This document shows, one piece after another, positions 12,961 to 37,300 of a DNA stretch of 63,787 nt. Below the pieces are notes generated by a model, which was given only the letters and a program-made list of their open reading frames with translations, did not search any database and had not been told where the DNA came from. This DNA is from Glycera tridactyla (taxonomy: Eukaryota): assembly GCA_965644265.1 (NCBI GenBank), contig OZ286461.1:115940214-116004000 (forward strand), written 5' to 3'. The position numbers were made by a program, and so were the translations under genes. Within the stretch, counting starts at the first letter, position 1; the number at the start of each line of letters is the position of its first letter.

Positions 12961-13555
12961 GATCGAGCGAAAAAAAGATACAGGGAATAGATGCCATGAC
13001 CATCAATATTCAGTGTGCCCATATGAGCCCTCTCCCCTTTTTTCAGCGAGAGAACAATGAAATTGAATACTATTGTATACAATCATATTCCATTTATTCC
13101 AATTGTTTCATCACCGCAGGTGCTATATACCTCATCAGTATGTTCAGGAATTCAATCATAGGCAGAAATGGAGACCATGTTCGCTCTTGCTGTAGGTTTC
13201 AGGTAGTCTTAAACAATATACAATAGACCAAAGGTCCGAAAATAATGGTCTTTGCACTGGTCACAGCTACACTGATACCCTCCTCAGAATACGCACACAT
13301 GCAAGCACAGAAGAGGAGGTTTGAAAATTCAATCACAGATAGAGGATTTGCCTTGCCAAGCTTAGATCTTCCTGCCAAAATTAGCCCTCACCAGCAATGG
13401 GGAGACTAAAACCTTCAGGCTATGACAGTGGACTGGGATCGGTCAGAAACTGTCATAAAACAACACCCAAACAACAACATATTGACACTGGGTACATGAA
13501 GTCAGTGAGAGTCAGTGATGGGAATATCCGGCCCACCACGTACCCCTGTGTCCAG

Positions 13556-23543: not shown

Positions 23544-24992
23544 TATCGGCACCAGTAGCCAGGTATCGGGATCAGTAGCCAGGTATCGGGATCGGTAGCC
23601 AGGTATCGGCATCAGGCAGCCAGGTATCGGGATCAGTAGCCAGGTATCTGGATCAGTAGCTAGGTATCGGCACCAGTAGCCAGGTATCGGCACCAGTAGG
23701 TATCGGCACCAGTAACCAGGTATCGGCACCAGTAGCCAGGTATCGGCATCAGTAGCCAGGTATCGGCACCAGTAGCCAGGTATCGGCACCAGTAGCCAGG
23801 TATCGGCATCAGTAGCCAGGTATCGGCATCAGTAGCCAGGTATCGGGATCAGTAGCAAGGTATCGGCACCAGTAGCCAGGTATCGGGATCAGTAGCCAGG
23901 TATCGGCACCAGTAGCCAGGTATCGGCACCAGTAGCCAGGTATCGGCATCAGTAGCCAGGTATCGGCATCAGTAGCCAGGTATCGGCATCAGTAGCCAGG
24001 TATCCGCACCAGTAGCCAGGTATCGGCACCAGTAGCCAGGTATCGGGATCAGTAGCCAGGTATCGGCACCAGTAGCCAGGTATCGGCATAAGTAGCCAGG
24101 TATCGGCACCAGTAGCCAGGTATCGGGATCAGTAGCCAGGTATCGGGATCAGTAGCCAGGTATCGGCACCAGTGGCCAGGTATCGGGATCAGTAGCCAGG
24201 TATCGGGATCAGTAGCAAGGTATCGGCATCAGTAGCCAGGTATCGGGATCAGTAGCCAGGTATCGGCACCAGTAGCCAGGTATCGGCATAAGTAGCCAGG
24301 TATCGGCACCAGTAGCCAGGTATCGGGATCAGTAGCCAGGTATCAGCATCAGTAGCCAGGTATCGGCATCAGTAGCCAGGTATCGGCACCAGTAGCCAGG
24401 TATCGGCATCAGTAGACAGGTATCGGCACCAGTAGCCAGGTATCGGCATAAGTAGCCAGGTATCGGGATCAGTAGCCAGGTATCGGCACCAGTAGCCAGG
24501 TATCGGCATGAGTAGCCAGGTATCGGCACCAGTAGCCAGGTATCGGGATCAGTAGCCAGGTATTGGCATCAGTAGCCAGGTATCGGCATCAGTAGCCAGG
24601 TATCGGCATCAGTAGCCAGGTATCGGCACCAGTAGCCAGGTATCGGCACCAGTAGCCAGGTATCGGCATCAGTAGCCAGGTATCGGCATCAGTAGCCAGG
24701 TATTGGGATCAGTAGCCAGGTATCGGCACCAGTAGCCAGGTATCGGCACCAGTAGCCAGGTATCGGCACCAGTAGCCAGGTATCGGCACCAGTAGCCAGG
24801 TATCGGCATCAGTAGCCAGGTATCGGCATCAGTAGCCAGGTATCGGGATTAGTAGCCAGGTATCGGCACCAGTAGCCAGGTATCGGGATCAGTAGCCAGG
24901 TATCGGCACCAGTAGCCAGGTATGGGCATCAGTAGCCAGGTATCGGCGTCAGTAGCCAGGTATCGGCACCAGTAGCCAGGTATCGGCATCAG
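23544..24992. repeat. 20-bp minisatellite array, ~73 copies
   Basis: Unit AGTAGCCAGGTATCGG+(CACC/CATC/GATC), head-to-tail with no spacers. Confidence 0.98.
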
Positions 24993-25245
24993 ATATCGAA
25001 CTGAGACTGTCGAGTGAGGATGCCTCGGCCCAAACATCCAGTAGTGATTCCAGTCAAAGCAAAGAGTATATCAGTGTGATAGGAGTCAGTGATACGAGAA
25101 TACTCAGATATCCCAGATATTACACAGACATCCTTCTCATAGCCACGGAGCTCATTATTATCATTTCACGGGTAACATACAATTCATGGCCAGGTGGAAT
25201 ATAAATCCATCACACACACACACATATATATATATATTTTTTTTT

Positions 25246-25864
25246 TTTAGTAAGACGAGGCAAAGGGCGTCTATCTCTGGCCACGGTAAGACTCGGAATG
25301 GTGGTTTTGTTCACAACCACCGTAGGTGATGTCACACCTATCGTAGCCTAGGCTACGGCGTCAGTTTTAGGTAGCATGCTCCTAAAGCCAGTGCCTATAC
25401 TTTTGATGAAAAGTTCTATTTTTTACCTTTACATCTCTTCCGAGTTTCAGCTATTTTAGCCTCATCAGTTACCAAAAAATATATGTATTGCAGTAGACAT
25501 GTGTTCAGTGTTGGAGAAGAATCTTTCCTCCAACTGGGCACCATTTTTGGGTAATTTGGAAGGGGGCCCCTTTCTATTTCCCTCTTCCTCTGATCTCTCA
25601 CTATTGAGTGATCCCCTTGAGTCTCTGATTTATTCATATCAGATGGGGGCAGAGGTTCGATCAGATTTCCCCCAGAATTAGTGGGTGGGTGTAACTGTCA
25701 CTGTGCACTACTTTAGATAGCAGTTCCAGTTTCCCCTGAATTTTTACGAAGTGATGAATTTGAAAAAATTCGATAATGGCGGTACTGCCTAATTAGGGTT
25801 CCTATTGACGTCACAAACGGCTCCCACGATGGGGGTCTTCTAGTCCTAACTTCTGTGGGGGAGG
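25246..25864 (-). repeat. 3' pseudo-LTR of the PLE
   Basis: Direct repeat of 31483-32112; about 24 substitutions and 3 indels by manual alignment (~96% identity). Followed on the minus strand by an A-tract and (TA)n. Confidence 0.95.
25285..25473 (-). ncRNA. Type I hammerhead ribozyme with 139-nt stem III insert (3' copy)
   Basis: GGUAA-CUGAUGA-GGCUA/AAA/UAGCU-GAAA-CUCGGAA...(139 nt)...UUCCGAG-UC-UUACC. Stem I 5 bp, stem II 5 bp, stem III 8 bp; GUC site, cleavage predicted at 25290|25289. Confidence 0.85.
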
Positions 25865-26058
25865 GAGAACTGGTAGAATGTGTTCTCATATCCCATCTCA
25901 AAAGTATTGAAAGAAGGAAGGTCATAGGTTCAGGGTATTGCTGCCCACTTTGGACCAACTAAAAATGAGATTATGTGAACGAGGCTAGGGTGGGTCCCAA
26001 AGTTGCTGACCACCCTGTTCCTGTGACCTTTGGGTTCGGGTGCATGTCTATAGTTCAA

Positions 26059-28538
26059 TCAAAATTTATTTGTTTCCCTATAGTGTCTCCAATTTCTGCA
26101 ACTTGTTTCCAAGGGTGTCCTGTCCTTGGTATTCAGGCCCAATGGTAGCATTGTTCTCAGTCTCTGGATCCAATTAAATTCAATTTGGAGCCTGAGGGTA
26201 AGACCATGGGTACTCTTTGGGTGGGCATGGATGAAATCCACTATCGTTTTTTCCATGTCTTTCAGTCCATCATGTCCCCGTGAGAGGAAGTGGCGGCTTA
26301 CGTCTTCTTTTCTGTTTCCTCTCTTTATTGCTCCGGCATGTGCTCCAAATCTCTCATGTAGGCTATTCCCTGTTTGGCCTATATATTGTTTGGTGCATTT
26401 TTTGCAGCTGATGCAATATATGATATTGCTACTTTGGCAGCTCACGTCCCATTTCGTAATGTATGTGCGTCCAGTGCTTGAGCTGTCTATTTTGCCTGAT
26501 TTATTCAATAATGGACAGAATCGACATTTCTTGCTGGTGCACTTCCTCGGTAGCTTTCGTCCTGGGTCCTTCTCCTTCTGCTGAGGGATCCTGGCTTTCA
26601 CTAGAATGTCTCTGAGGTTCTCTGGTTGCCTGAAGCCATATGTTGGTTTCTCGTCAGCTAATAGTTTTGTTGCTGATGAGCGAGTCAGTAAGTCCCAGCT
26701 CTCAGAGATGAGTTTTCTAAGCCCTACATCCGTGGGTGTATGGGTCGTGGTCAGAAATATGCCGTTTGATTTATTGTCTGCAGTAGTCTGTTCTTCCGTC
26801 ATTTTCAACACGGCTTCATCAAGTAAAACATCTCGATTTTTAGAAGACGCCTTGATGAATGCATCCCTGATAATTTTCAAGGGATATCCTCTTTTTCTAA
26901 AATGACACATGAGGATAAGACTGTGGTGGATGAATCTGTCATTTCTACTGCAAATTCTCCTCAGTCTAAGTAGTTGGCTATATGGGAGACTCGTCTTACA
27001 ATGTCCAGGATGAGCCGATGTACAATGGAGATATGCATGACTGTTTGTAGGTTTTGTGTACAAGTCAGTTCACAATACCCCGTTCTGGTCTTTGTGTAGA
27101 GTCGTGTCTATTTTCTGATCTGAACAGTCCATGGTGAATTTGATACTATGGTGACAGTCATTTAAATAGGACACAAAGTTATCTAGCGCGTCCCTCCCAT
27201 GCTGCCAAATGATTATCAGATAGTCCAGATAACGTTTGTAGATAATTGGTTGCAAATGGTATGAGTGAATGAATTTCTCCTCAAATTCTGACATGAAAAT
27301 ATTTGCCAGACTGGGGGCTACTCTGGTACCCATTGCAGTACCTCCTACTTGTAGGTAGTTCCCATCGTTAAACTGGAAGTTATTACATCTCAATGTTTTT
27401 TCCAGGAGTCTGCATAGACGAGAGTTACTGGGTTTACAGTATGTAATACGATACTTGTTAAGTAATTTTCTAACACTCTCAACAGCTTCATCTGTCGGTA
27501 TGTTGGTGTATAGGCTGGTCACGTCCATAGTGACCAGGAGGCTGTCCTTCTCAACCTTTTCGATATTTCTGATTTCTGAGAGAAAATGAGTGGTATCTTT
27601 GAGATATGATCTAATATGATTCATCCTTGTTTTTAGAAAGAAGTCCACAAATTTAGGAGCTTCTCAGCGGGGCATTCATTTGCAGAGACAATTGGGCGTC
27701 CCGGCGGGTTCACTAGTTTCTTGTGAATTCTGGGAAGTAAGTAGAATTGATCCATCCTAGGGTCCTCGGACACCAGGAAATCTCTTGTCTGTTTACTTAT
27801 TTCTCCACTCCCTTTTAGTTCGTCCAAAATTTCAGTCACCTCTGTGTTGTGTTTTCCTGTAAGGTCTGAGTCTGTTTTCCGATAGAATTTCTCATCAGAC
27901 AACTGTCTAAGGCCCTCCCGGATGTAATCATCTTTATTCATGATTACCACACTAGAACCTCTGTCAGCTTTCTTTATGATGACCTCGTGATTGTTCCTCA
28001 ATGCTCTCAAAGCTGTTTTCTCCCCTTTCTTCAGGTTCTGTTTCAAGGGTGCATGTAGTGGGAGCTTGGCTAGTCCCAGCTCATTCACAGATACCGTACA
28101 TTCTATCATTGTTGGGGAATTGTTGGGTAGCCAATTGGATTTTGGAGCAAAATCCCTATGGTGGAATGGACTGAAACAGGCCATACTAGTGATTGCGGAT
28201 GTGCCAGAGAATGATGTGTTTGGCGTCGACGCTGTCGCATGTAGGTTCTTATGTTTCGAAGTCCAAGCCTCGTTTTTATCCACTTCCTTGTCAAAAAAGG
28301 CCCTCAGCTTGACGTTTCGGTGGAAAGCATCTATGTCCCGTCTTAGATCCCCCATGGATGGTTCCCCTGGGGTGGGACAAAAGGTGAGGCCCTTGTTCAA
28401 CAGAGACGTGGTATTTGCATCCAAGACGTGGCTGGACACGTTGACCACCATATTGTTGTGTTCAGAAATGTACACAATGTAACTGACCAGTGAACAATCA
28501 AACAATATCTGGAATGAAGAGGCACACAAATTATACAA
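26059..28538 (-). pseudogene. PLE ORF2: reverse transcriptase plus GIY-YIG endonuclease, disrupted
   Basis: VVNVSS..LLNKGLTFCPTP, LVTMDVTSLYTNIP, QVGGTAMGTRVAP, YTKPTNSHAYL, RGYP, CTSKKCRFC, NIIYCISCKKCTKQYIGQTG, SRHF, IEFNWIQRL..PLGLN. Lesions: frameshift near 27655, catalytic YxDD read as YLDY, in-frame TGA at 27072-27070, short in-frame deletion at KI-DTTL. Confidence 0.93.
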
Positions 28539-28630
28539 TGAATCAACTTTATTTGTTGTGTTGAATTAAAGGTCCGCATTTGAATTGTTCATGTTTGTCA
28601 GATCCGGGAGATCTGGTTTCATATTCAAAT

Positions 28631-31444
28631 TTACTTCATATTTGCAAACGCATCCTTTACAGCATCTCGGATCCTCCGTTTTAGCTGCTCCTGATCTTGA
28701 ATTGGAGCTGTGGGTGGTCCGTTCTCTGTCGGTCGGCTCGTGCCCGGATTTTCGTTTGGAGTTTGGGGTCTCTCGGTTCCGATAGTAATTCTTAGGGGGT
28801 TCTTATTCACTGTCTTTTTGGATTTCGGAACCCCCGTCCGAAAATACTTCTCACCATCAGCAAACCCTGCATCCTTGGTTTTGAACTCAACCTTCCTCTG
28901 CTTGGATTTCTGGGTGGAGGTTGTGGCACTGGCAGGTGGTGATCTGTCAGCACGCCTTTTTCCTTTTCCCTTTTGGTTGGTATCCTTCCTTTCCCTTCCT
29001 TTTCCTTTCGGTGTCACCATGTCGCTGCTGCTGCTTGATAGGCATTGGAGAGCCCTTTTTCTGGGCCTTCTTGTTCGTTGGTTTCTTGGTAGCAGGTGCA
29101 GCAGAATTGGCTGTCTTCCCTGTACCATTGTCTGATGACTTTGTCGGCTCTTGCTGTGTCTGGTCTCGTGCGAGATAACGGTGTCTAGCTCGTTTCTGGG
29201 CCGGTTTATCTGTCCCGGGGCCCCGAACACAAGAGGACGATTGTCATCCAAGAGCCGACGGCTCTTCCGTGCTTCAATTAGGGCTTTGAGGACTTCATCT
29301 TTTGTGGGGCGGACGTTCTTAGTCTCGCTCTCCATCTTCGTGAGGACCTTCTTCTTCGTGTGTTCTGATCTGGCTATCTGATTTCGTAGCAGTTTGTCAA
29401 ATTCACGAAAGCCTTCCTCATTTTCTCGGTAGTGCCTTTTTACATTCGACACTTCGACGCTGGCGTCTTCATCCAGATCATCTGCCTCCCGATCTAACCA
29501 GTACGCCATTCTTGACATTATGTCAACTGCCTGGCTTCTCACATGGTCGAAAAATTTCTGTTGGAACCTTGAACTCTCTGGTAGCCAATTGGGCCACTTG
29601 GCTAGGCCCATGGTGTAGTCGGGAGTGATGTTTCTGCTGCGAAGGCTACGGAGGTGGTTCGCGTAGAGGCGGCAATAGGCTGCACTTGTCAGGTCTCGAC
29701 GTGCCTGTCGGGAGTGGCGTCTTGCTCTCTCTGGCACCTCCGGGATTTGCGTCCTCTCAATTTCCTGACACAAAAGAGAAGGGCTCTTATTGGAGATCAG
29801 GTCTTCCATTTTGTTTTCATCTCCATTTTCTTGGAGTGCTAAGAGGTTGGCAACATTTTCGGCAGACGTTGGGGTACTTGTGACATTTGTTTTGATATTA
29901 GTCACCCCTGGTGGGATATCCTTTGGGGGATCAATCACAATTGGTTCAGCTGTGTCCGAAATGGCCTCGTCCAACAGCGCAGCCTTCTTACTTAAAGCAG
30001 GTGCTGAGCTCGTGAATAGGTCAGTCGGGATGGCTGCTTGTTTCTTTTTTTGATTTCCAAAAGTTGTCTGCTCATCACTACCGGACAGATCTCTTTTCCC
30101 AGGTCTTGCTCTTTGGGTAGAGCTCGAGATGGGGGTCAAAGTCAGGTTTAACTCTGAGTTGGATACCCCAAATACTTGACTCATTGAGATTTTGTCCAGC
30201 ATGTCTGTGTGATCGGTTGTTTTAGAAGCCCTTCTGACTGGTTGTACTATTTTTCTCATATGGGACTTCACAGGGATCACAGTGGGATCATCCAGGGTTT
30301 CCTGAAATTCATGTACAGGGCTCCTCTGACCGGATGGAATTCGCTGAGTTTCATTGGCATCCCAAAATGTCTCCATACTAGGATCCATGGCTGGCCAAGA
30401 ATGGGGGGGCCCCATTTCTTTTGGGCCTACTTTATCTCCTGATGGCTCAGACCTGGCAGCTTTTGGGTCCGTTCTGGGCTCCTGTATATTTTCCACAGGT
30501 TTGTTTTTGTTTAGGTTTTGCTGGAAATACTTGTCAATTTTTCGAACTGTACCTTGTTTTGCTAAGGGGGTGGTTTGTTTCTTGTCCTTTTGATGAGGTT
30601 TCTTTATTTGATTCTCCTGCAGGGACGTTTCAGAAGTATTTGGGCTGAGGGCATTGTTGTTTCTGTTATGTTCTGAACGTGGGAGACTCATGCCCTCTTT
30701 CCCCCTATTCCCTCTTGTCAGTACATGAAACACTGCTTCACACACTTTTTCTGTGTGTGCAGCGTCCCATTCTAAGCAAGGGTCTGCCTTACGTGATACA
30801 ATTTTCGTCACTTCGGCGAAACTCGGTCGTATATTTTGTATTTTTGGCGATTCCGGGTTTTCAGTAGAGATCGGCAATTCCGCATTTGTACGCGGTTCGG
30901 TCAATTTGGTTAATTCATGAAATTGGCCGATCGGCGGCACGCAGACGTCTCGTGCGTCATTATAACCGTCGCTATTCGGACGCACGGAGTTGGGAATGCG
31001 TCTTTTACATGGCTTTCTCCATTTTTCTGGATTGCCTGACGCCTTCCCCACTTTGAGAACTGTAAATATAGCTCTTGTAGGGGTGGAGTCATTCATTTCG
31101 GGACCTTTCCAGCACTCGTCATTCACTACTCTAATTGTGTCGGTCGATTGTTTATTGTTGCTTCGATTTATAGCAGTACTGGGCTTTTTCGTATGACCCC
31201 TGATGCCTTGGGAGCTGCCTGAGATAAAATATCCTGGCAAAGGACTCCTCCCCTGGCTCTGTTTAGCAGGTTTGTCAAGTGACGCATCCACACTTTCAGT
31301 GGTAGACGTCGAGCGTGCGGACTCGGCGGATTTTGCCAGAGGCTCGCTATCGCTGTCAACAAAGTCATCCAGTGACTCCTCCGAATCAACGACGCTTTCG
31401 TTGATGCTTTGATCTGTGTATTCCCCATCGCTCAAGGGATCCAT
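28631..31444 (-). CDS. PLE ORF1, 937 aa, mostly low-complexity/disordered, with a helical core at ~aa 570-710 and a basic C-terminus
   Basis: Uninterrupted 2.8-kb ORF inside the element, starting 38 nt after the 5' repeat. HLRSLRSRNITPDYTMGL loosely resembles the H..FL..C...IIP.GL segment of PLE N-terminal regions (by eye). Confidence 0.8.
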   Translation of the reverse strand: MDPLSDGEYTDQSINESVVDSEESLDDFVDSDSEPLAKSAESARSTSTTESVDASLDKPAKQSQGRSPLPGYFISGSSQGIRGHTKKPSTAINRSNNKQSTDTIRVVNDECWKGPEMNDSTPTRAIFTVLKVGKASGNPEKWRKPCKRRIPNSVRPNSDGYNDARDVCVPPIGQFHELTKLTEPRTNAELPISTENPESPKIQNIRPSFAEVTKIVSRKADPCLEWDAAHTEKVCEAVFHVLTRGNRGKEGMSLPRSEHNRNNNALSPNTSETSLQENQIKKPHQKDKKQTTPLAKQGTVRKIDKYFQQNLNKNKPVENIQEPRTDPKAARSEPSGDKVGPKEMGPPHSWPAMDPSMETFWDANETQRIPSGQRSPVHEFQETLDDPTVIPVKSHMRKIVQPVRRASKTTDHTDMLDKISMSQVFGVSNSELNLTLTPISSSTQRARPGKRDLSGSDEQTTFGNQKKKQAAIPTDLFTSSAPALSKKAALLDEAISDTAEPIVIDPPKDIPPGVTNIKTNVTSTPTSAENVANLLALQENGDENKMEDLISNKSPSLLCQEIERTQIPEVPERARRHSRQARRDLTSAAYCRLYANHLRSLRSRNITPDYTMGLAKWPNWLPESSRFQQKFFDHVRSQAVDIMSRMAYWLDREADDLDEDASVEVSNVKRHYRENEEGFREFDKLLRNQIARSEHTKKKVLTKMESETKNVRPTKDEVLKALIEARKSRRLLDDNRPLVFGAPGQINRPRNELDTVISHETRHSKSRQSHQTMVQGRQPILLHLLPRNQRTRRPRKRALQCLSSSSSDMVTPKGKGRERKDTNQKGKGKRRADRSPPASATTSTQKSKQRKVEFKTKDAGFADGEKYFRTGVPKSKKTVNKNPLRITIGTERPQTPNENPGTSRPTENGPPTAPIQDQEQLKRRIRDAVKDAFANMK

Positions 31445-31482
31445 TGCAAGTCAGGACCAGAAATTAGCGCAAAAAATGTGAA

Positions 31483-32112
31483 TTTAGTAAGACGAGGCAA
31501 AGCGCGTCTATCTCTGGCCACGGTAAGACTCGGAATGGTGGTTTTGTTTACAACCGCCGTAGGTGACGTCACACCTATCGTAGCCTAGGCTACGGCGACA
31601 GTTTTAGGTAGCATGCTCCTAAAGCCAGTGCCTTTAATTTTGATGAAAAGTTGTATTTTTCACCTCCACATCTCTTCCGAGTTTCGGCTATTTTAGCCTT
31701 ATCAGTTACCAAAAAAAAATATGTATTGCAGTAGACATGTGTTCAGTGTTGGAGAAGAATCTCTCCTGCAACTGGGCACCATTTTTGGGTGATTTGAAAG
31801 GGGGCCCCTCTCTATTTCCCTCTTCCTCTGATCTCTCACTATTGAGTGATCCCCTTGAGTCTCTGATTTATTCATATCAGATGGGGGGGGGGGGGGCAGA
31901 GGTTTGATCAGATTTCCCACAGAATTAGTGGGTGGGTGTAACTGTCACTGTTCACTATTTTAGATAGCAGTTCCAGTTTCCCCTGAATTTTTACGAAGTG
32001 ATGAATTTGAAAAAAATTCGATAATGGCGGTACTGCCTAATTAGGGTTCCTATTGACGTCACAAACGGCTCCCACGATGGGGGTCTTCTAGTCCTAACTT
32101 CTGTGGGGGAGG
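31483..32112 (-). repeat. 5' pseudo-LTR of the PLE
   Basis: Direct repeat of 25246-25864, preceded on the minus strand by (TA)n and TTTTCTTT. Confidence 0.95.
31522..31710 (-). ncRNA. Type I hammerhead ribozyme with stem III insert (5' copy, G8A core variant)
   Basis: GGUAA-CUGAUAA-GGCUA/AAA/UAGCC-GAAA-CUCGGAA...UUCCGAG-UC-UUACC; cleavage position 31527|31526. Confidence 0.8.
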
Positions 32113-32627
32113 AAAGAAAAATATATACATATATATATATATCACGAACAGATAGTGAATACGATGGCTAGAACATATACGACCCGAGAATTCAGACGGC
32201 CTTGAGGAAGCAAGGAATGAGCGACGCCTCACGGTTAATCATAGAATGCGTGACAGGGATTTCAGGATATTTGCGTGATGCAATGGCTGCCCTCTCAGAA
32301 GAATACCCTGCGTAGAAGCTTTGATAAAGTACTCTGAGCACCAGGTAGGGTTGAAGAGCTGGCATATATTACCGTGTTCAATGATGAATTGATGGATATA
32401 CGCCAGCCTACCTGGATGTCTCATCTGTACTGGAGAATCTACACAATTGGTTACGGCTCTGACCAGTGACTGAGATGATAGCGAGACAAAGTAGAGGCAT
32501 AATGATGACGAAATACAAAGTGATGCCGGACTACATACCGCAAAATGATGCAAAGTGCCAAATGATGCCGAGAGAACCACTAAGACATTCACAGGATCCT
32601 GCTCATGATGATGAAAAAATCGACGGC

Positions 32628-32740: not shown

Positions 32741-33823
32741 NNNNNNNNNNNNNNNNNNNNNNNNNNNNNNNNNNNNNNNNNNNNNNNNNNNNNNNNNNNN
32801 NNNNNNNNNNNNNNNNNNNNNNNNNNNNNNNNNNNNNNNNNNNNNNNNNNNNNNNNNNNNNNNNNNNNNNNNNNNNNNNNNNNNNNNNNNNNNNNNNNNN
32901 NNNNNGTATTGGCAGCAATTTGCAGCAGCTACGCAAAATGATGCCAGTAGGCTGACATAGTCACCCATACTTTCACTCTCATGATGAAGACGTGCCGACC
33001 ACACCCATACACAACAAGCAACTGCTCATCAGCGACCCCATTAGCTTAAACTGCAAGTGAAAAAAAATCAAAGTTGTACGTGGTCAGCACCTCAAGTGCC
33101 GATATCTTACGCAACCACCCTCAGTCATCATAGTATTACGGCAAATACATTCCTGAAATGTGCCGTCCCCTGATTGCTCATCGAATATGTCAAGAGCCGA
33201 TTGCTGCCTGGTTAGAAGGTTTATTACCAGTCTACATTTGCTGAAAATACTCACTGGTATCTATCCAGTCCATGGAAGTGTGTGAGATATAGAATCAGCT
33301 TCTCAAAAGCCTGGGTCATTGAACTGATCCAGATTATTGGCATATATTGGCACATACTGCGGACGTACATGTGAGGCTATGGAGAGTGATAAGCAGCATC
33401 AAATTAGTAATGCTGGAGGTTGTCTGCAAAATAATGCACTCGAAAAGTATGCATAGTATATGTAATATCAGAGGAATGTTGCCTCACCCTGGGTAGCGCC
33501 ACCGCAGGCTCAATTTTGGCGGCCCTGAAATAGCTGGGTTCTATTTCGCAGTCCCTCTGCATCTGCCTCTGTCTCTGCCCGATCTACCCCCCTCCATCTC
33601 TCTTCTTCCGGCGTAGAACAAGCCTGGGCCTCCTCATAATAGGTAAGGCTGCATAAACCACGTCGAGAATTAGCAGAGTCCAAGCCACGTTGCTGAATGA
33701 CCTTCGTCAGTCAATGTTCAATGTGATTAGGAAAAGATTCACTCGAATACTCAGCCCACATCATTCTTTACAAATTGACTTTGAATAATCAAACGTTGGA
33801 TGAAGGGATTGTCTGGAAAATCA

Positions 33824-34320
33824 TCTCTTAGTGAGTATGAACTTTCTTTTAATCCCTACCACGAATCTACTTGAATTGGTTTTCCTCTCTTAGTGAGTAT
33901 GATCTTTCTTTTGATCCCTACCACAGATCTAATTGAATAGGTTTTCCTCTCTCAGTGAGTATGATCTTTCTTTTAATCCCTACCACAGATCTACTTGAAT
34001 AGGTTTTCCTCTCTTAGTGAGTATGATCTTTCTTTTGATCCCTACCACAGATCTAATTGAATAGGTTTTCCTCTCTCAGTGAGTATGATCTTTCTTTTAA
34101 TCCCTACCACAGATCTACTTGAATAGGTTTTCCTCTCTTAGTGAGTATGATCTTTCTTTTGATCCCTACCACAGATCTGATTGAATAGGTTTTCCTCTCT
34201 TAGTGAGTATGATCTTTCTTTTAATCCCTACCACAGATCTACCTGAATAGGTTTTCCTCTCTTAGTGAGTATGATATTTCTTTCAATCCCTACCACAGAT
34301 CTACTTGAATAGGTTTTCCT
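33824..34320. repeat. 62-bp tandem repeat, 8 copies
   Basis: Unit TCTCTTAGTGAGTATGATCTTTCTTTTRATCCCTACCACAGATCTAMTTGAATAGGTTTTCC. Confidence 0.96.
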
Positions 34321-37300
34321 CACGGAGTATGTCTATTTCACCATGTTTAACAATTACTCGCGACCGGTTTATCAAAGGCCAGTGGTGTATACGTGTCGAT
34401 GCTACGTTCACGTGACAGGTTCCCCGTGCAATGTCGCGAACAGATGGTCAGGTTCCCTGACGAAAATGCTTTTATTCATGACAACGTTACATGGAGAACA
34501 CAAGCATTGGACAAGAAGAACTGAAATTGTAGTGGCGCACCAGTGATGCATCTTTTTCACTTGAAGTAGTGTACGAACAATGTCTTTGAGGACATGAACA
34601 CTTCTTCAGTTTGTCACTACCTAGTTTACGACTGGCATAGAGTAACGTTGACATGCATCTTATACCACATCTTTTTTTTCAGGATGAGTAGACAAAATCG
34701 GACTTCGGTGTTTGATATTACAGAGAATCCCCTCCTGTAAAATCCTTCAGAGTTGCAACAAGGCTAGTGGGATGAATAGAGATGCAATTACCTTGACTTC
34801 CTCTGATCACCCCGACACAAGGACGCACGTCAGAAAAAAAATACCTGAAAAAATAATTTCATAAAAGAATCTATCGAAGCACACAAGCAAGTTCCCAAAA
34901 AACACGCGATCAAGAATTGATTAAAAAGTTGTCAATTACTCCATTCTTCGAATCCTTAAACAGCCAAGTACAGGCTAGTGAAATCAACAATTTCTGCGCT
35001 GATATCAGTCCAGTCTTTGAGTTATCCAACACCCCACCACCCCATATCGTGGCACAAATCCAACAGACAAAACAATTCACCGTTGTGCAGATAGGATCGT
35101 TTGAGCAATATACTGCTGAAATTGTTACCAAATAATTTTATTGAATCAATATGTCATATTTTCAATTGGTCGAGCACACACACACATATACTCACACGCA
35201 CACAGGCACACACTTTCGATATCGCAATAGACCTGAATTACCTGCCTAGTTCTATAATGTTATATCTTATTATCCTACCTTCTGAATTCAATGTCACTCC
35301 CACCGGTTGATTTCTTCCTTTTTCTTCCTTTTTCGACTTTCATGTCCTCATCTTTGTTCCTACAGATTTCGTTTTACTAACTGGATGTTTCATTAATTCG
35401 TTTGTTTGAGTTGTGTCGAAATTCGCATCCAATATGACTCTGTCAATGCGAACTGTGAATAGAAGTTTTTTCTATTGAATTCAATTCAATATTGCTGGAA
35501 ATTTCGAAGAGAAATTCATGTTCGGGATGCAAGTATATCACTGTCAATCATCCTTGTTGATATAAATTTGGACGCGAATCTTACGCGTGACTCTTATCGT
35601 CTAACTCTTTTTGAAAAGTTGGGTCGCAGAACCACCAAAACTTATGAAGTAACTAAACAACCCGTCCGGAAGACCACATTGATTCCCACACAGATACCAA
35701 TCGACGCAATTTCATTTTTGTTGGGATGTGTTGTCTGACAGCAATCACCTCGACCTCTGCTGATGAAATTGACACAAGCAATATCGCTTGAAAGTCCGAT
35801 GAGATTGCTGACAAGAACTGTCAACATTTCTGAAGATTGAGAAACGACAAAAAGATAATTCGCGGATGTGCGTAATTCCTGGCATGGGAAATCAGTCTGT
35901 CACCGCATGCAAGTCTCGAGTGAGTAGTAAAGGCCGAAATGAGTATCCGAGTGGGTGATTGATGCCGTAAAGTTTGAGATTGAGGGTGAATACAAACTTA
36001 AATGGGGAAATCAGGCCGGCTACTGACCCCCGTGATCATTGCCGATGCCATGTCACACTAATCAATCAATGTTTGAATAATCTTGAGCTCCGATCGATTT
36101 CCCATTAAGGATGTTCATATGACGATCATCGATCACAGAAATCGATCAACAGTACGATCTCATTCTCAGTACTGACATGACAGGACTTCGGCAGAGAGTA
36201 AACACTGAGAAGATCAATCAATGTCTTATATAGAACAATATCTAACTTCACTTTATAAATTATCCTCCTTATGTAGGTTTGACTCCTGCCGCCTAGCTTA
36301 TGTTGAAGCAGGCAAGTTACCCGAACCTATGAAGCAGCTCAACGACCCAGCCACGAGCACACCCGACACATATGTCTTCAGTCGGACCTTTCATGAATCC
36401 GTCACAATCCACATTTTGTAAATGAAGCTGGTCATTTAGTAGCAACACCAAGAGCAATAACAACAACAACTACACACCCCACTCCCCATATAGATACCTC
36501 CAGTTGGCTGCTTCATTGATCTGCCAAAATTGACGTTTCTCAATGATGCTGGCGGCAGCAGTTGATATGCTTGTTCCGACACCTTGTCATCATAAGTGAT
36601 AGCCCCCATCCAACCTTGAGAATGATAATCGAGGATTATCCTCTATCCAGTACAGGATAATGTTTCGCTTTTCTCTCAACTCCGAGAATAGACACTGAAA
36701 CATCCGTATCAATTTGTTTGCAGAAAACATCAGAGATCTCGATTCCAGATCCACGGCATGGTGTGAAGGTAGTTGCAGATGTTATGCCACATGGCCCAAG
36801 AAAATCAAAAGGGAAACTGGATTGTGTTCCATTATGAATTTTCTGAATGAAGTATTAGTTATTACAAGGGTGAGCTCATTGTTTGGCGTTGGTGTTGGAT
36901 TCATATATCAACCATATAGATTGTATATAGGTTTCTGACCGCTGAACAGCACAATGCGGTGCAGTACCATTCATCTGGAATATTATGTAAAGGTGGCATG
37001 GGTTACCAACCTGAGATTAAACACGGGTATTGACCCCTAAATTATGACCATATTGGAAATAGAATTCTGAAAATGTAACGAAAATCGCCAAATGCTAGGA
37101 TTCTTGCATGTGAGTAGGTGGGGTTGAATGTCAACGGATTCGACGGATTTCTTCTGCTGACTTTTTTCTTGTGGGAGATTAACTAATCAAAAGTGCAAAT
37201 TTATACAAAAATAAGTCCGAATCATGAAATACCCCAACGCATCACTCCCACGAAGTTGCTGACCATCCCAACATACCTTGATACACACAACATACACTGA

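Follow-up and report, generated by a model that had tools for sequence, protein, structure and literature searches.

Locus and predicted ribozyme

The window analyzed here, a stretch of 63,787 nt from Glycera tridactyla (contig OZ286461.1, positions 115,940,214 to 116,004,000 of the forward strand), carries on its minus strand a Penelope-like element (PLE), and the terminal repeats of this element each contain the two halves of a predicted type I hammerhead ribozyme separated by a long insert. The element was recognized as a decayed, endonuclease-positive (EN+) PLE with pseudo-long terminal repeats (pLTRs) because it combines reverse transcriptase (RT) and GIY-YIG domains, direct repeats, a linker motif and (TA)n-rich flanks. 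Searches with Pfam models matched RVT_1 (E = 1.5e-8) and GIY-YIG (E = 1.3e-5) to consecutive pieces of the second open reading frame (ORF2) and returned nothing for ORF1 or the N-terminal ORF2 piece. In the 334-amino-acid (aa) ORF2 piece, the GIY-YIG domain is preceded by a linker, C-TSKK-C-RF-C (C-x4-C-x2-C), that is kept in the alignment consensus of relatives, and a zinc-finger-like CX2-5CxxC linker between RT and EN has been given for the Neptune and Nematis clades (Craig et al., PMC8557442). Judged by its domains and linker motif, the element is of the Neptune type. The two direct repeats, of ~625 nt each, have a spacing of 6237–6248 nt and have diverged by 5.4%. Apart from these two repeats, a BLASTN search of the window with the element returned no further copies of it. 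The insertion target was a (TA)n microsatellite, a target preference that has been named for PLEs (PMC8557442).

The initial annotation had placed in the downstream pLTR, at 25285–25473 (−), a hammerhead whose core halves are split by 139 nt and joined by an 8-bp stem III (counting A15.1) and a 5-bp stem I. The sequence is as described there, and an unconstrained fold reproduces it. GAAA occupies 25448–25445 (−), the arms of stem III beyond the A15.1–U16.1 pair read CUCGGAA and UUCCGAG, and the long-range pairs total 13 (8 in stem III, A15.1–U16.1 included, and 5 in stem I). The A15.1–U16.1 pair is followed by H17, here C17 and not G, at the predicted cleavage site. When the 189 nt were folded with ViennaRNA, the minimum free energy structure contained all three helices, left the core unpaired and formed the insert into branched hairpins. 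Its energy was −59.8 kcal/mol, compared with −40.9 ± 3.9 kcal/mol for shuffled sequences (z = −4.9; 0/200 shuffles as good). Helix II, of 4–5 bp in the window, follows directly after A9, with no unpaired base between positions 9 and 10.1.

A relaxed descriptor was then used that consisted of CUGANGA, a stem II of at least 3 bp, GAAA, a stem III of at least 6 bp with at most 300 nt inside, H17 and a stem I of at least 4 bp. The sole match in the window was the site described above. In 400 first-order Markov simulations (62-kb sequences), the same descriptor gave a mean of 0.0025 matches each, none of which (0/400) was of the observed quality. The Rfam hammerhead covariance models had no match in the window at the gathering score or at E <= 10. 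Two other candidates were examined and rejected. A reading of the same core as a minimal hammerhead found, by inspection, no stem I partner in the bases directly after GAAA, and a second core-like string (CUGAUGA...GAAAC, 13105–13138, minus strand), for which the chance expectation is 0.48 per window, is not closed by a stem I or stem III.

All core positions and all 13 pairs had originally been claimed for both repeats. The 13 pairs are present in both, but the core is intact only downstream, as the upstream core reads CUGAUAA, with A at position 8 where the downstream copy has G. Conversely, the stem II closing pair G10.1–C11.1 is G–C in the upstream copy and in relatives and G.U downstream, where position 11.1 has changed from C (31686 in the upstream copy) to U (25449, a T in the DNA) at a CpG site. 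Each window copy thus carries one lesion, and these two changes, the repeat divergence and the broken ORF2 together make up the decay of the window copies. The positions of all features are collected in Table 1.

Table 1. Parts of the Penelope-like element and of its predicted split hammerhead, in window positions
Feature	Position	Strand	Basis or remark
Split type I hammerhead, downstream copy; core intact; pair 10.1–11.1 is G.U	25285..25473	−	Sequence, fold, descriptor
Stem I 5' strand, GGUAA	25469..25473	−	Partner 25289–25285
Core C3–A9, CUGAUGA	25462..25468	−	Sequence
Stem II hairpin: GGCU, loop AAAAU, AGCU	25449..25461	−	Sequence, fold
G12 A13 A14, then stem III 5' strand ACUCGGAA (25445–25438; A15.1 = 25445)	25438..25448	−	Sequence, fold
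139-nt helix III insert; branched hairpin domain with octamer resembling a cAMP response element (CRE); CpG-rich in relatives	25299..25437	−	Fold, motif and CpG statistics
Stem III 3' strand UUCCGAGU (25298–25291) and C17 (25290)	25290..25298	−	Predicted cleavage between 25290 and 25289
Stem I 3' strand, UUACC	25285..25289	−	Sequence, fold
Octamer TGACATCA, CpG-decayed TGACGTCA, inside downstream insert	25327..25334	−	Repeat comparison
Perfect 16-nt palindrome inside insert (second at 31579–31594)	25342..25357	−	Sequence
Tail of ~41–43 nt, predicted cleavage site to 3' end of element copy	25247..25289	−	End of pLTR alignment, then A12(TA)n(TG)n
Split hammerhead, upstream copy; 13/13 long-range pairs; 10.1–11.1 is G–C; core position 8 is A (31700)	31522..31710	−	Repeat comparison
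Whole PLE copy: upstream pLTR, ORF1, broken ORF2 (RT and GIY-YIG), downstream pLTR	25247..32112	−	Direct repeats, Pfam, (TA)n flanks
Upstream pLTR	31484..32112	−	94.6% identity to downstream pLTR
Downstream pLTR	25247..25864	−	Direct-repeat comparison
ORF1, 937 aa, low complexity, no Pfam match	28631..31444	−	Begins 82 nt downstream of upstream predicted cleavage site
ORF2, three pieces (27633–28538, 27070–27648, 26059–27063): RT, CX4CxxC linker, GIY-YIG	26059..28538	−	Pfam, ORF translations
5' flank, (TA)n-rich target sequence	32113..32143	−	Sequence inspection
3' flank, A-run, (TA)n, (TG)n; reads A12(TA)n(TG)n	25211..25246	−	Sequence inspection

A single ORF is usual in PLEs. ORF1 of the window element is rich in serine, lysine and proline, and BLASTP detected no significant similarity between it and the upstream ORF (786 aa, positions 2719–5079) of L006, a related element. 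A long, fast-evolving ORF1 may be a trait of the clade with split hammerheads. Two tandem repeats were also observed on the plus strand of the window: a long array of 20-nt repeats (64 registers or more, 93–95% identity) at about 23558–25100, just past the 3' flank of the element, and a repeat with a 62-nt period (about 10 units) at 33759–34378.

Conservation in related elements

Relatives of the element were sought through protein homology. The C-terminal 334-aa ORF2 piece identified 59 homologues with up to 60% identity, the DNA around several of these was fetched, and a 23-sequence protein alignment then yielded 80 more loci from metagenome contigs. Relatives with 40–59% identical proteins share the split layout, located downstream of the RT/EN ORF. 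Among the 68 ORF copies having at least 500 nt of downstream sequence, 59 were followed by the exact catalytic core with stem II, at a median of 322 nt past the end of the ORF. If at least 300 nt were available downstream of the core, closure was scored as stems I and III pairing in register around U-H with a combined score/length of at least 10 bp. Such closure was found for 34 of 45 cores (76%) and in 2.1% of controls in which the downstream sequence had been shuffled.

This left 33 unique split hammerheads among the relatives, with inserts of 127–483 nt that vary continuously in length. Stem I is 4–6 bp, helix II 3–5 bp and helix III 4–9 bp in these examples. Stem I occurs among them in 18 distinct 4-bp versions, of which 16 are fully complementary, and stem III in 21 distinct versions with complementarity kept. 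These raw pair counts are biased because the set was chosen by a pairing descriptor, a bias that the shuffle control and an independent RNAalifold analysis offset partly. In that analysis, a plain MAFFT alignment of 13 relatives yielded stems I, II and III as its sole consensus structure, and 7 of the 14 pairs showed compensatory double changes. The C15.2–G16.2 pair is kept in 32 of 33 examples, and position 17 is C in 18, A in 13 and U in 3 (a tally over the 33 loci and one likely chance match in L003). The closest protein relative (L001, 58% identity) has a homologous 5' ribozyme half at 2305–2335 (+) that is 88% identical over 25 nt and has U at core position 3; its contig stops short of the 3' half.

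In 16 related loci bearing the split motif, the Rfam hammerhead models had no match at E <= 1, a miss that can be put down to the long insert. The inference of the initial annotation, that a hammerhead with so large an inserted domain would escape motif searches, is strongly supported by the dozens of PLEs with the split layout, and in these the pairing of stems I and III is conserved and covaries, contrary to the outcome that the annotation named as refuting. From the frequency of the core, the closure over controls and the covarying stems, the split layout is an RNA structure that a PLE clade has conserved under selection, and not an accident of the window copy. A minimal PLE-type hammerhead of the classical kind, lacking an insert and having a palindromic helix III (ACAUGU), was also observed at about 11487–11526 (+) of L005. 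It comes from the same sample as many of the split ones, and therefore both architectures coexist in one genome.

Content of the helix III insert

The sequences of the inserts were compared with the remainder of their loci. Over a total of 8.0 kb of insert, 30 occurrences of the octamer TGACGTCA were counted (3.74 per kb), compared with 0.04–0.10 per kb elsewhere (about 40–90x), the half-sites TGACG/CGTCA occur at 15.5 per kb compared with about 1 per kb, and the CpG density is 51 per kb compared with 11–31 per kb. The 33 inserts fall into 23 clusters without mutual BLASTN similarity, and 16 of these 23 contain a perfect octamer, which shows no enrichment outside the insert in relatives. The window insert is unalignable with those of its nearest relatives apart from the octamer, which is perfect at its upstream-copy counterpart (31564–31571, minus strand). 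An additional perfect TGACGTCA was observed near the 5' end of each pLTR (25806–25813 and 32054–32061, minus strand), about 350 nt upstream of the ribozyme.

A role of the octamer at the RNA level was considered and rejected, as it has no consistent hairpin-loop context and is variously found in a loop, in a stem or paired with a second copy. Because this RNA context is inconsistent and the same sequence is kept across relatives, not as a covarying palindrome, we favor a putative protein-binding site at the DNA level. It could be a CRE/bZIP-type site, or akin to RGACGTGY, the downstream promoter element within the internal promoter of Drosophila Penelope (PMC2377424). The promoter of PLEs has been located in their pLTRs (PMC2377424, PMC6765202), and the most likely role of the insert is to serve the pLTR as a DNA-level promoter or enhancer, nested within helix III. 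The first hairpin of the insert shows apparent compensatory changes in one alignment (A4, judged by eye only), and RNA structure and a DNA regulatory role of the insert may not be exclusive.

Element ends and proposed function

The tail between the predicted cleavage site and the end of the window copy recurs in relatives. Eight contigs of relatives, several with (TA)n at the end, stop 47–76 nt past the predicted cleavage site, and in a ninth (L086) (TA)n is reached about 40 nt past its site. These ends match the 43-nt tail followed by A12(TA)n in the window, so that integrated copies have their 3' boundary at a short, fixed distance past the predicted cleavage site. With such a boundary, the template must have been tandem, circular or left uncut at the site at the time of copying. 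It agrees with the 'tail' described for PLEs (PMC8557442) and with reverse transcription by internal initiation (PMC11167929). The unit from one predicted cleavage site to the next is 6237 nt, and the genomic copy amounts to a unit with one repeat added, which is what would be expected if copying went more than once round a circle or along a concatemer, an idea from Cervera and de la Peña (PMC4209133).

In the proposed mechanism, the 5' half of the ribozyme would supply a stem I strand, CUGAUGA, stem II, GAAA and a stem III strand, the 3' half would supply a stem III strand, U16.1, H17 and a stem I strand, and folding would unite both halves. Because helix III is stable, a single RNA should be able to form the active junction without a partner. 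Cleavage after C17 would leave a tail of about 43 nt at the 3' end of the element copy; in the upstream repeat, it would fall 82 nt before the start of ORF1. The likely job of the ribozyme would be to cut RNAs of unit length (6237 nt) out of PLE transcripts that are tandem or read-through, and these RNAs might then be circularized.

Tentatively, the nesting itself might be purposeful, with the CpG-rich, TGACGTCA-bearing helix III module serving as the pLTR promoter and the split layout separating self-initiated from foreign-initiated transcripts and setting the processed end, although we give this idea less than even odds. If transcription started within the insert, self-initiated transcripts would begin downstream of the catalytic 5' half and would be uncuttable at their own 5' repeat. 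If a transcript instead arrived by read-through or from a tandem copy, it would hold a complete ribozyme in that repeat and would be cut there. Every transcript would hold a complete ribozyme in its 3' repeat.

Alternative explanations

We estimate at roughly 0.8 the probability that the motif is a genuine type I hammerhead of an EN+ Neptune-type PLE clade, in which a stable helix III closes a large domain, a monomer fold is possible and cleavage is predicted after C17. Cleavage, monomer competence, the role in processing and promoter function are properties that we infer for this RNA. In addition to the bias of the pair counts, several points weigh against this interpretation. Self-cleavage is a prediction from structure. 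Stem I is short, at 4–6 bp, and if 60-nt flanks are included in the fold, its predicted pairing probability has a median of 0.00 and that of stem III a median of 0.51, compared with 0.96 for stem III in isolation. In one consensus fold (alignment A5, columns 1–24: L071, L078, L081, L082, L083, L087, L089 and L073), the stem I 5' strand and C3 pair with the stem II 3' strand, possibly an inactive conformer of this subfamily that competes with the hammerhead fold. In the window, L013, L016 and L034, loop II was not seen to be consistently complementary to the flanks (by eye, with no systematic test), and no loop I/II contact or pseudoknot was identified. Minimal PLE hammerheads given an artificial helix III cleave poorly at physiological Mg2+ (PMC4209133), and a PLE hammerhead from Anolis required the protein of its element (PMC11167929). 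The upstream window copy should be inactivated by A8 opposite C3. For the promoter, motif enrichment is the sole basis.

Part of this evidence would also suit a ribozyme that is real and not monomer-competent, its halves pairing between molecules or tandem copies or requiring a PLE protein or chaperone, with a dimeric or assisted mode left unchanged by the long helix III. A short stem I that is predicted to be outcompeted in its flanking context, tertiary contacts of which none was identified, the protein-assisted Anolis hammerhead (PMC11167929) and the slow minimal PLE hammerheads with added helix III (PMC4209133) all point that way, and either the 16-nt palindrome of the window insert or the 8-nt palindrome TGACGTCA of most inserts could pair two RNAs. 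We nevertheless consider this explanation unlikely. The halves always lie 127–483 nt apart on the same strand of the same repeat, where a stable helix III of 6–8 bp closes in cis, and activity as a monomer has been reported for a hammerhead of a fungal PLE whose helix III is large (PMC4209133). The octamer, being sequence-specific and in an inconsistent RNA context, is better explained as a DNA site bound by a protein than as a loop for RNA dimerization.

That the motif is a chance or decayed look-alike, in which complementarity exists without RNA function and conservation stems from DNA-level repeat features, is very improbable. The hammerhead consensus is short, and a few equally good chance matches would be expected among some 250,000 windows (~5e-5 per window, by extrapolation from the simulations); both window copies also carry a lesion. 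Against this, the motif has the sense orientation within a PLE pLTR, the very place where a hammerhead of such an element should be, and it is kept in dozens of relatives with compensatory changes in stems I and III though their inserts are unalignable, a complementarity between segments 130–480 nt apart that selection at the DNA level would not preserve. The same unalignable inserts might suggest that the 139 nt arose by a secondary insertion (a mobile element or a duplication) that disrupted a compact hammerhead in the window family only. This is scarcely credible, since the insert is long in 33 of 33 related examples and helix III compact in none, and since lengths run continuously from 127 to 483 nt and TGACGTCA and a high CpG content are common to most inserts. 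Because long inserts are universal among the examples, their lengths continuous and their motif and CpG content shared, the long domain is the ancestral, maintained state of the clade.

Comparison with known systems

What appears to be new is the large helix III domain in animal PLE hammerheads, CpG-rich and TGACGTCA-bearing, which is well supported as a structure by the comparison of related sequences. If descriptors or covariance models allow only short loops, ribozymes of retroelements will be undercounted, and elements without a motif match are then labelled as lacking a hammerhead. If the monomeric fold acts as we propose, a requirement for dimers would not be universal among animal PLEs. 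The relatives offer a natural set of constructs, with the same core and very different helix III domains, for probing the part that the ribozyme plays in the PLE cycle. If the promoter content is true, they would also present an unusual case of a DNA regulatory module inside a ribozyme helix.

In an incomplete search of the literature, no animal PLE was seen to be credited with a helix III domain of more than 100 nt, and the animal forms in the available text of PMC4209133, PMC7761336, PMC6765202 and PMC7229834 are only minimal. Relaxed descriptors with longer loops gave Craig et al. no further detections in the clades that they examined (PMC8557442). The initial annotation's account of metazoan PLE hammerheads as minimal motifs agrees with these sources, in which helix III is absent or 1–2 bp with a palindromic loop and the ribozymes barely cleave and are thought to act as dimers (PMC4209133, PMC6765202, PMC7761336); their helix II is enlarged to 6–8 bp, and an unpaired base separates positions 9 and 10.1 (PMC4209133). 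The split type shares with them the type I topology, a helix I of 4–6 bp, the same catalytic core and the placement in the pLTR of a PLE with RT and GIY-YIG domains, in the sense orientation and near the point where the ORF of the following unit starts. Contacts between loops I and II are not obvious in the minimal type, and inspection by eye identified none in the split type. It differs from them in its helix III of 6–8 bp closing 127–483 nt, in its helix II of 3–5 bp without a bulge and in the possibility of a monomeric fold.

Hammerheads with a 'large Helix III' have been described in endonuclease-less PLEs of fungi and protists, and the one from Serpula, the nearest precedent from experiment, cleaves as a single motif, with a kobs of 1.97 per min at 10 mM Mg2+ and 0.16 per min at 1 mM (PMC4209133). 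Unlike the split type, these belong to telomere-associated elements without EN, and the available text gives for them no helix III domain of more than 100 nt and no internal promoter-like motif (PMC4209133). Both are type I hammerheads borne by PLEs, with a stable helix III. Tertiary contacts between helices I and II are not recognizable in the fungal and protist type, and none was identified by eye in the split type. Separation of the two halves as such also has a counterpart in a mammalian host mRNA. A discontinuous hammerhead of CLEC2 3' UTRs was reportedly found by Martick et al. in 2008 (cited in PMC4209133). Its intervening sequence is said to run through stem I. Its catalytic and substrate segments, like those of the split type, lie hundreds of nucleotides apart within one transcript. 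With that topology, the two would differ in that the split type has its long domain in helix III, leaves stem I open and is hosted by the repeat of a retroelement.

The non-LTR retrozymes of animals carry type I hammerheads related to those of PLE pLTRs, and in their units of 170–400 nt a strongly self-paired RNA lies beside the ribozyme (PMC7229834; bioRxiv 10.64898/2026.07.22.740005). In retrozymes, however, the two parts of the hammerhead adjoin, and the structured RNA is external to the ribozyme, running from a stem I strand of one unit to that of the next, whereas in the split type the long domain lies within helix III of a single ribozyme and the element is autonomous.
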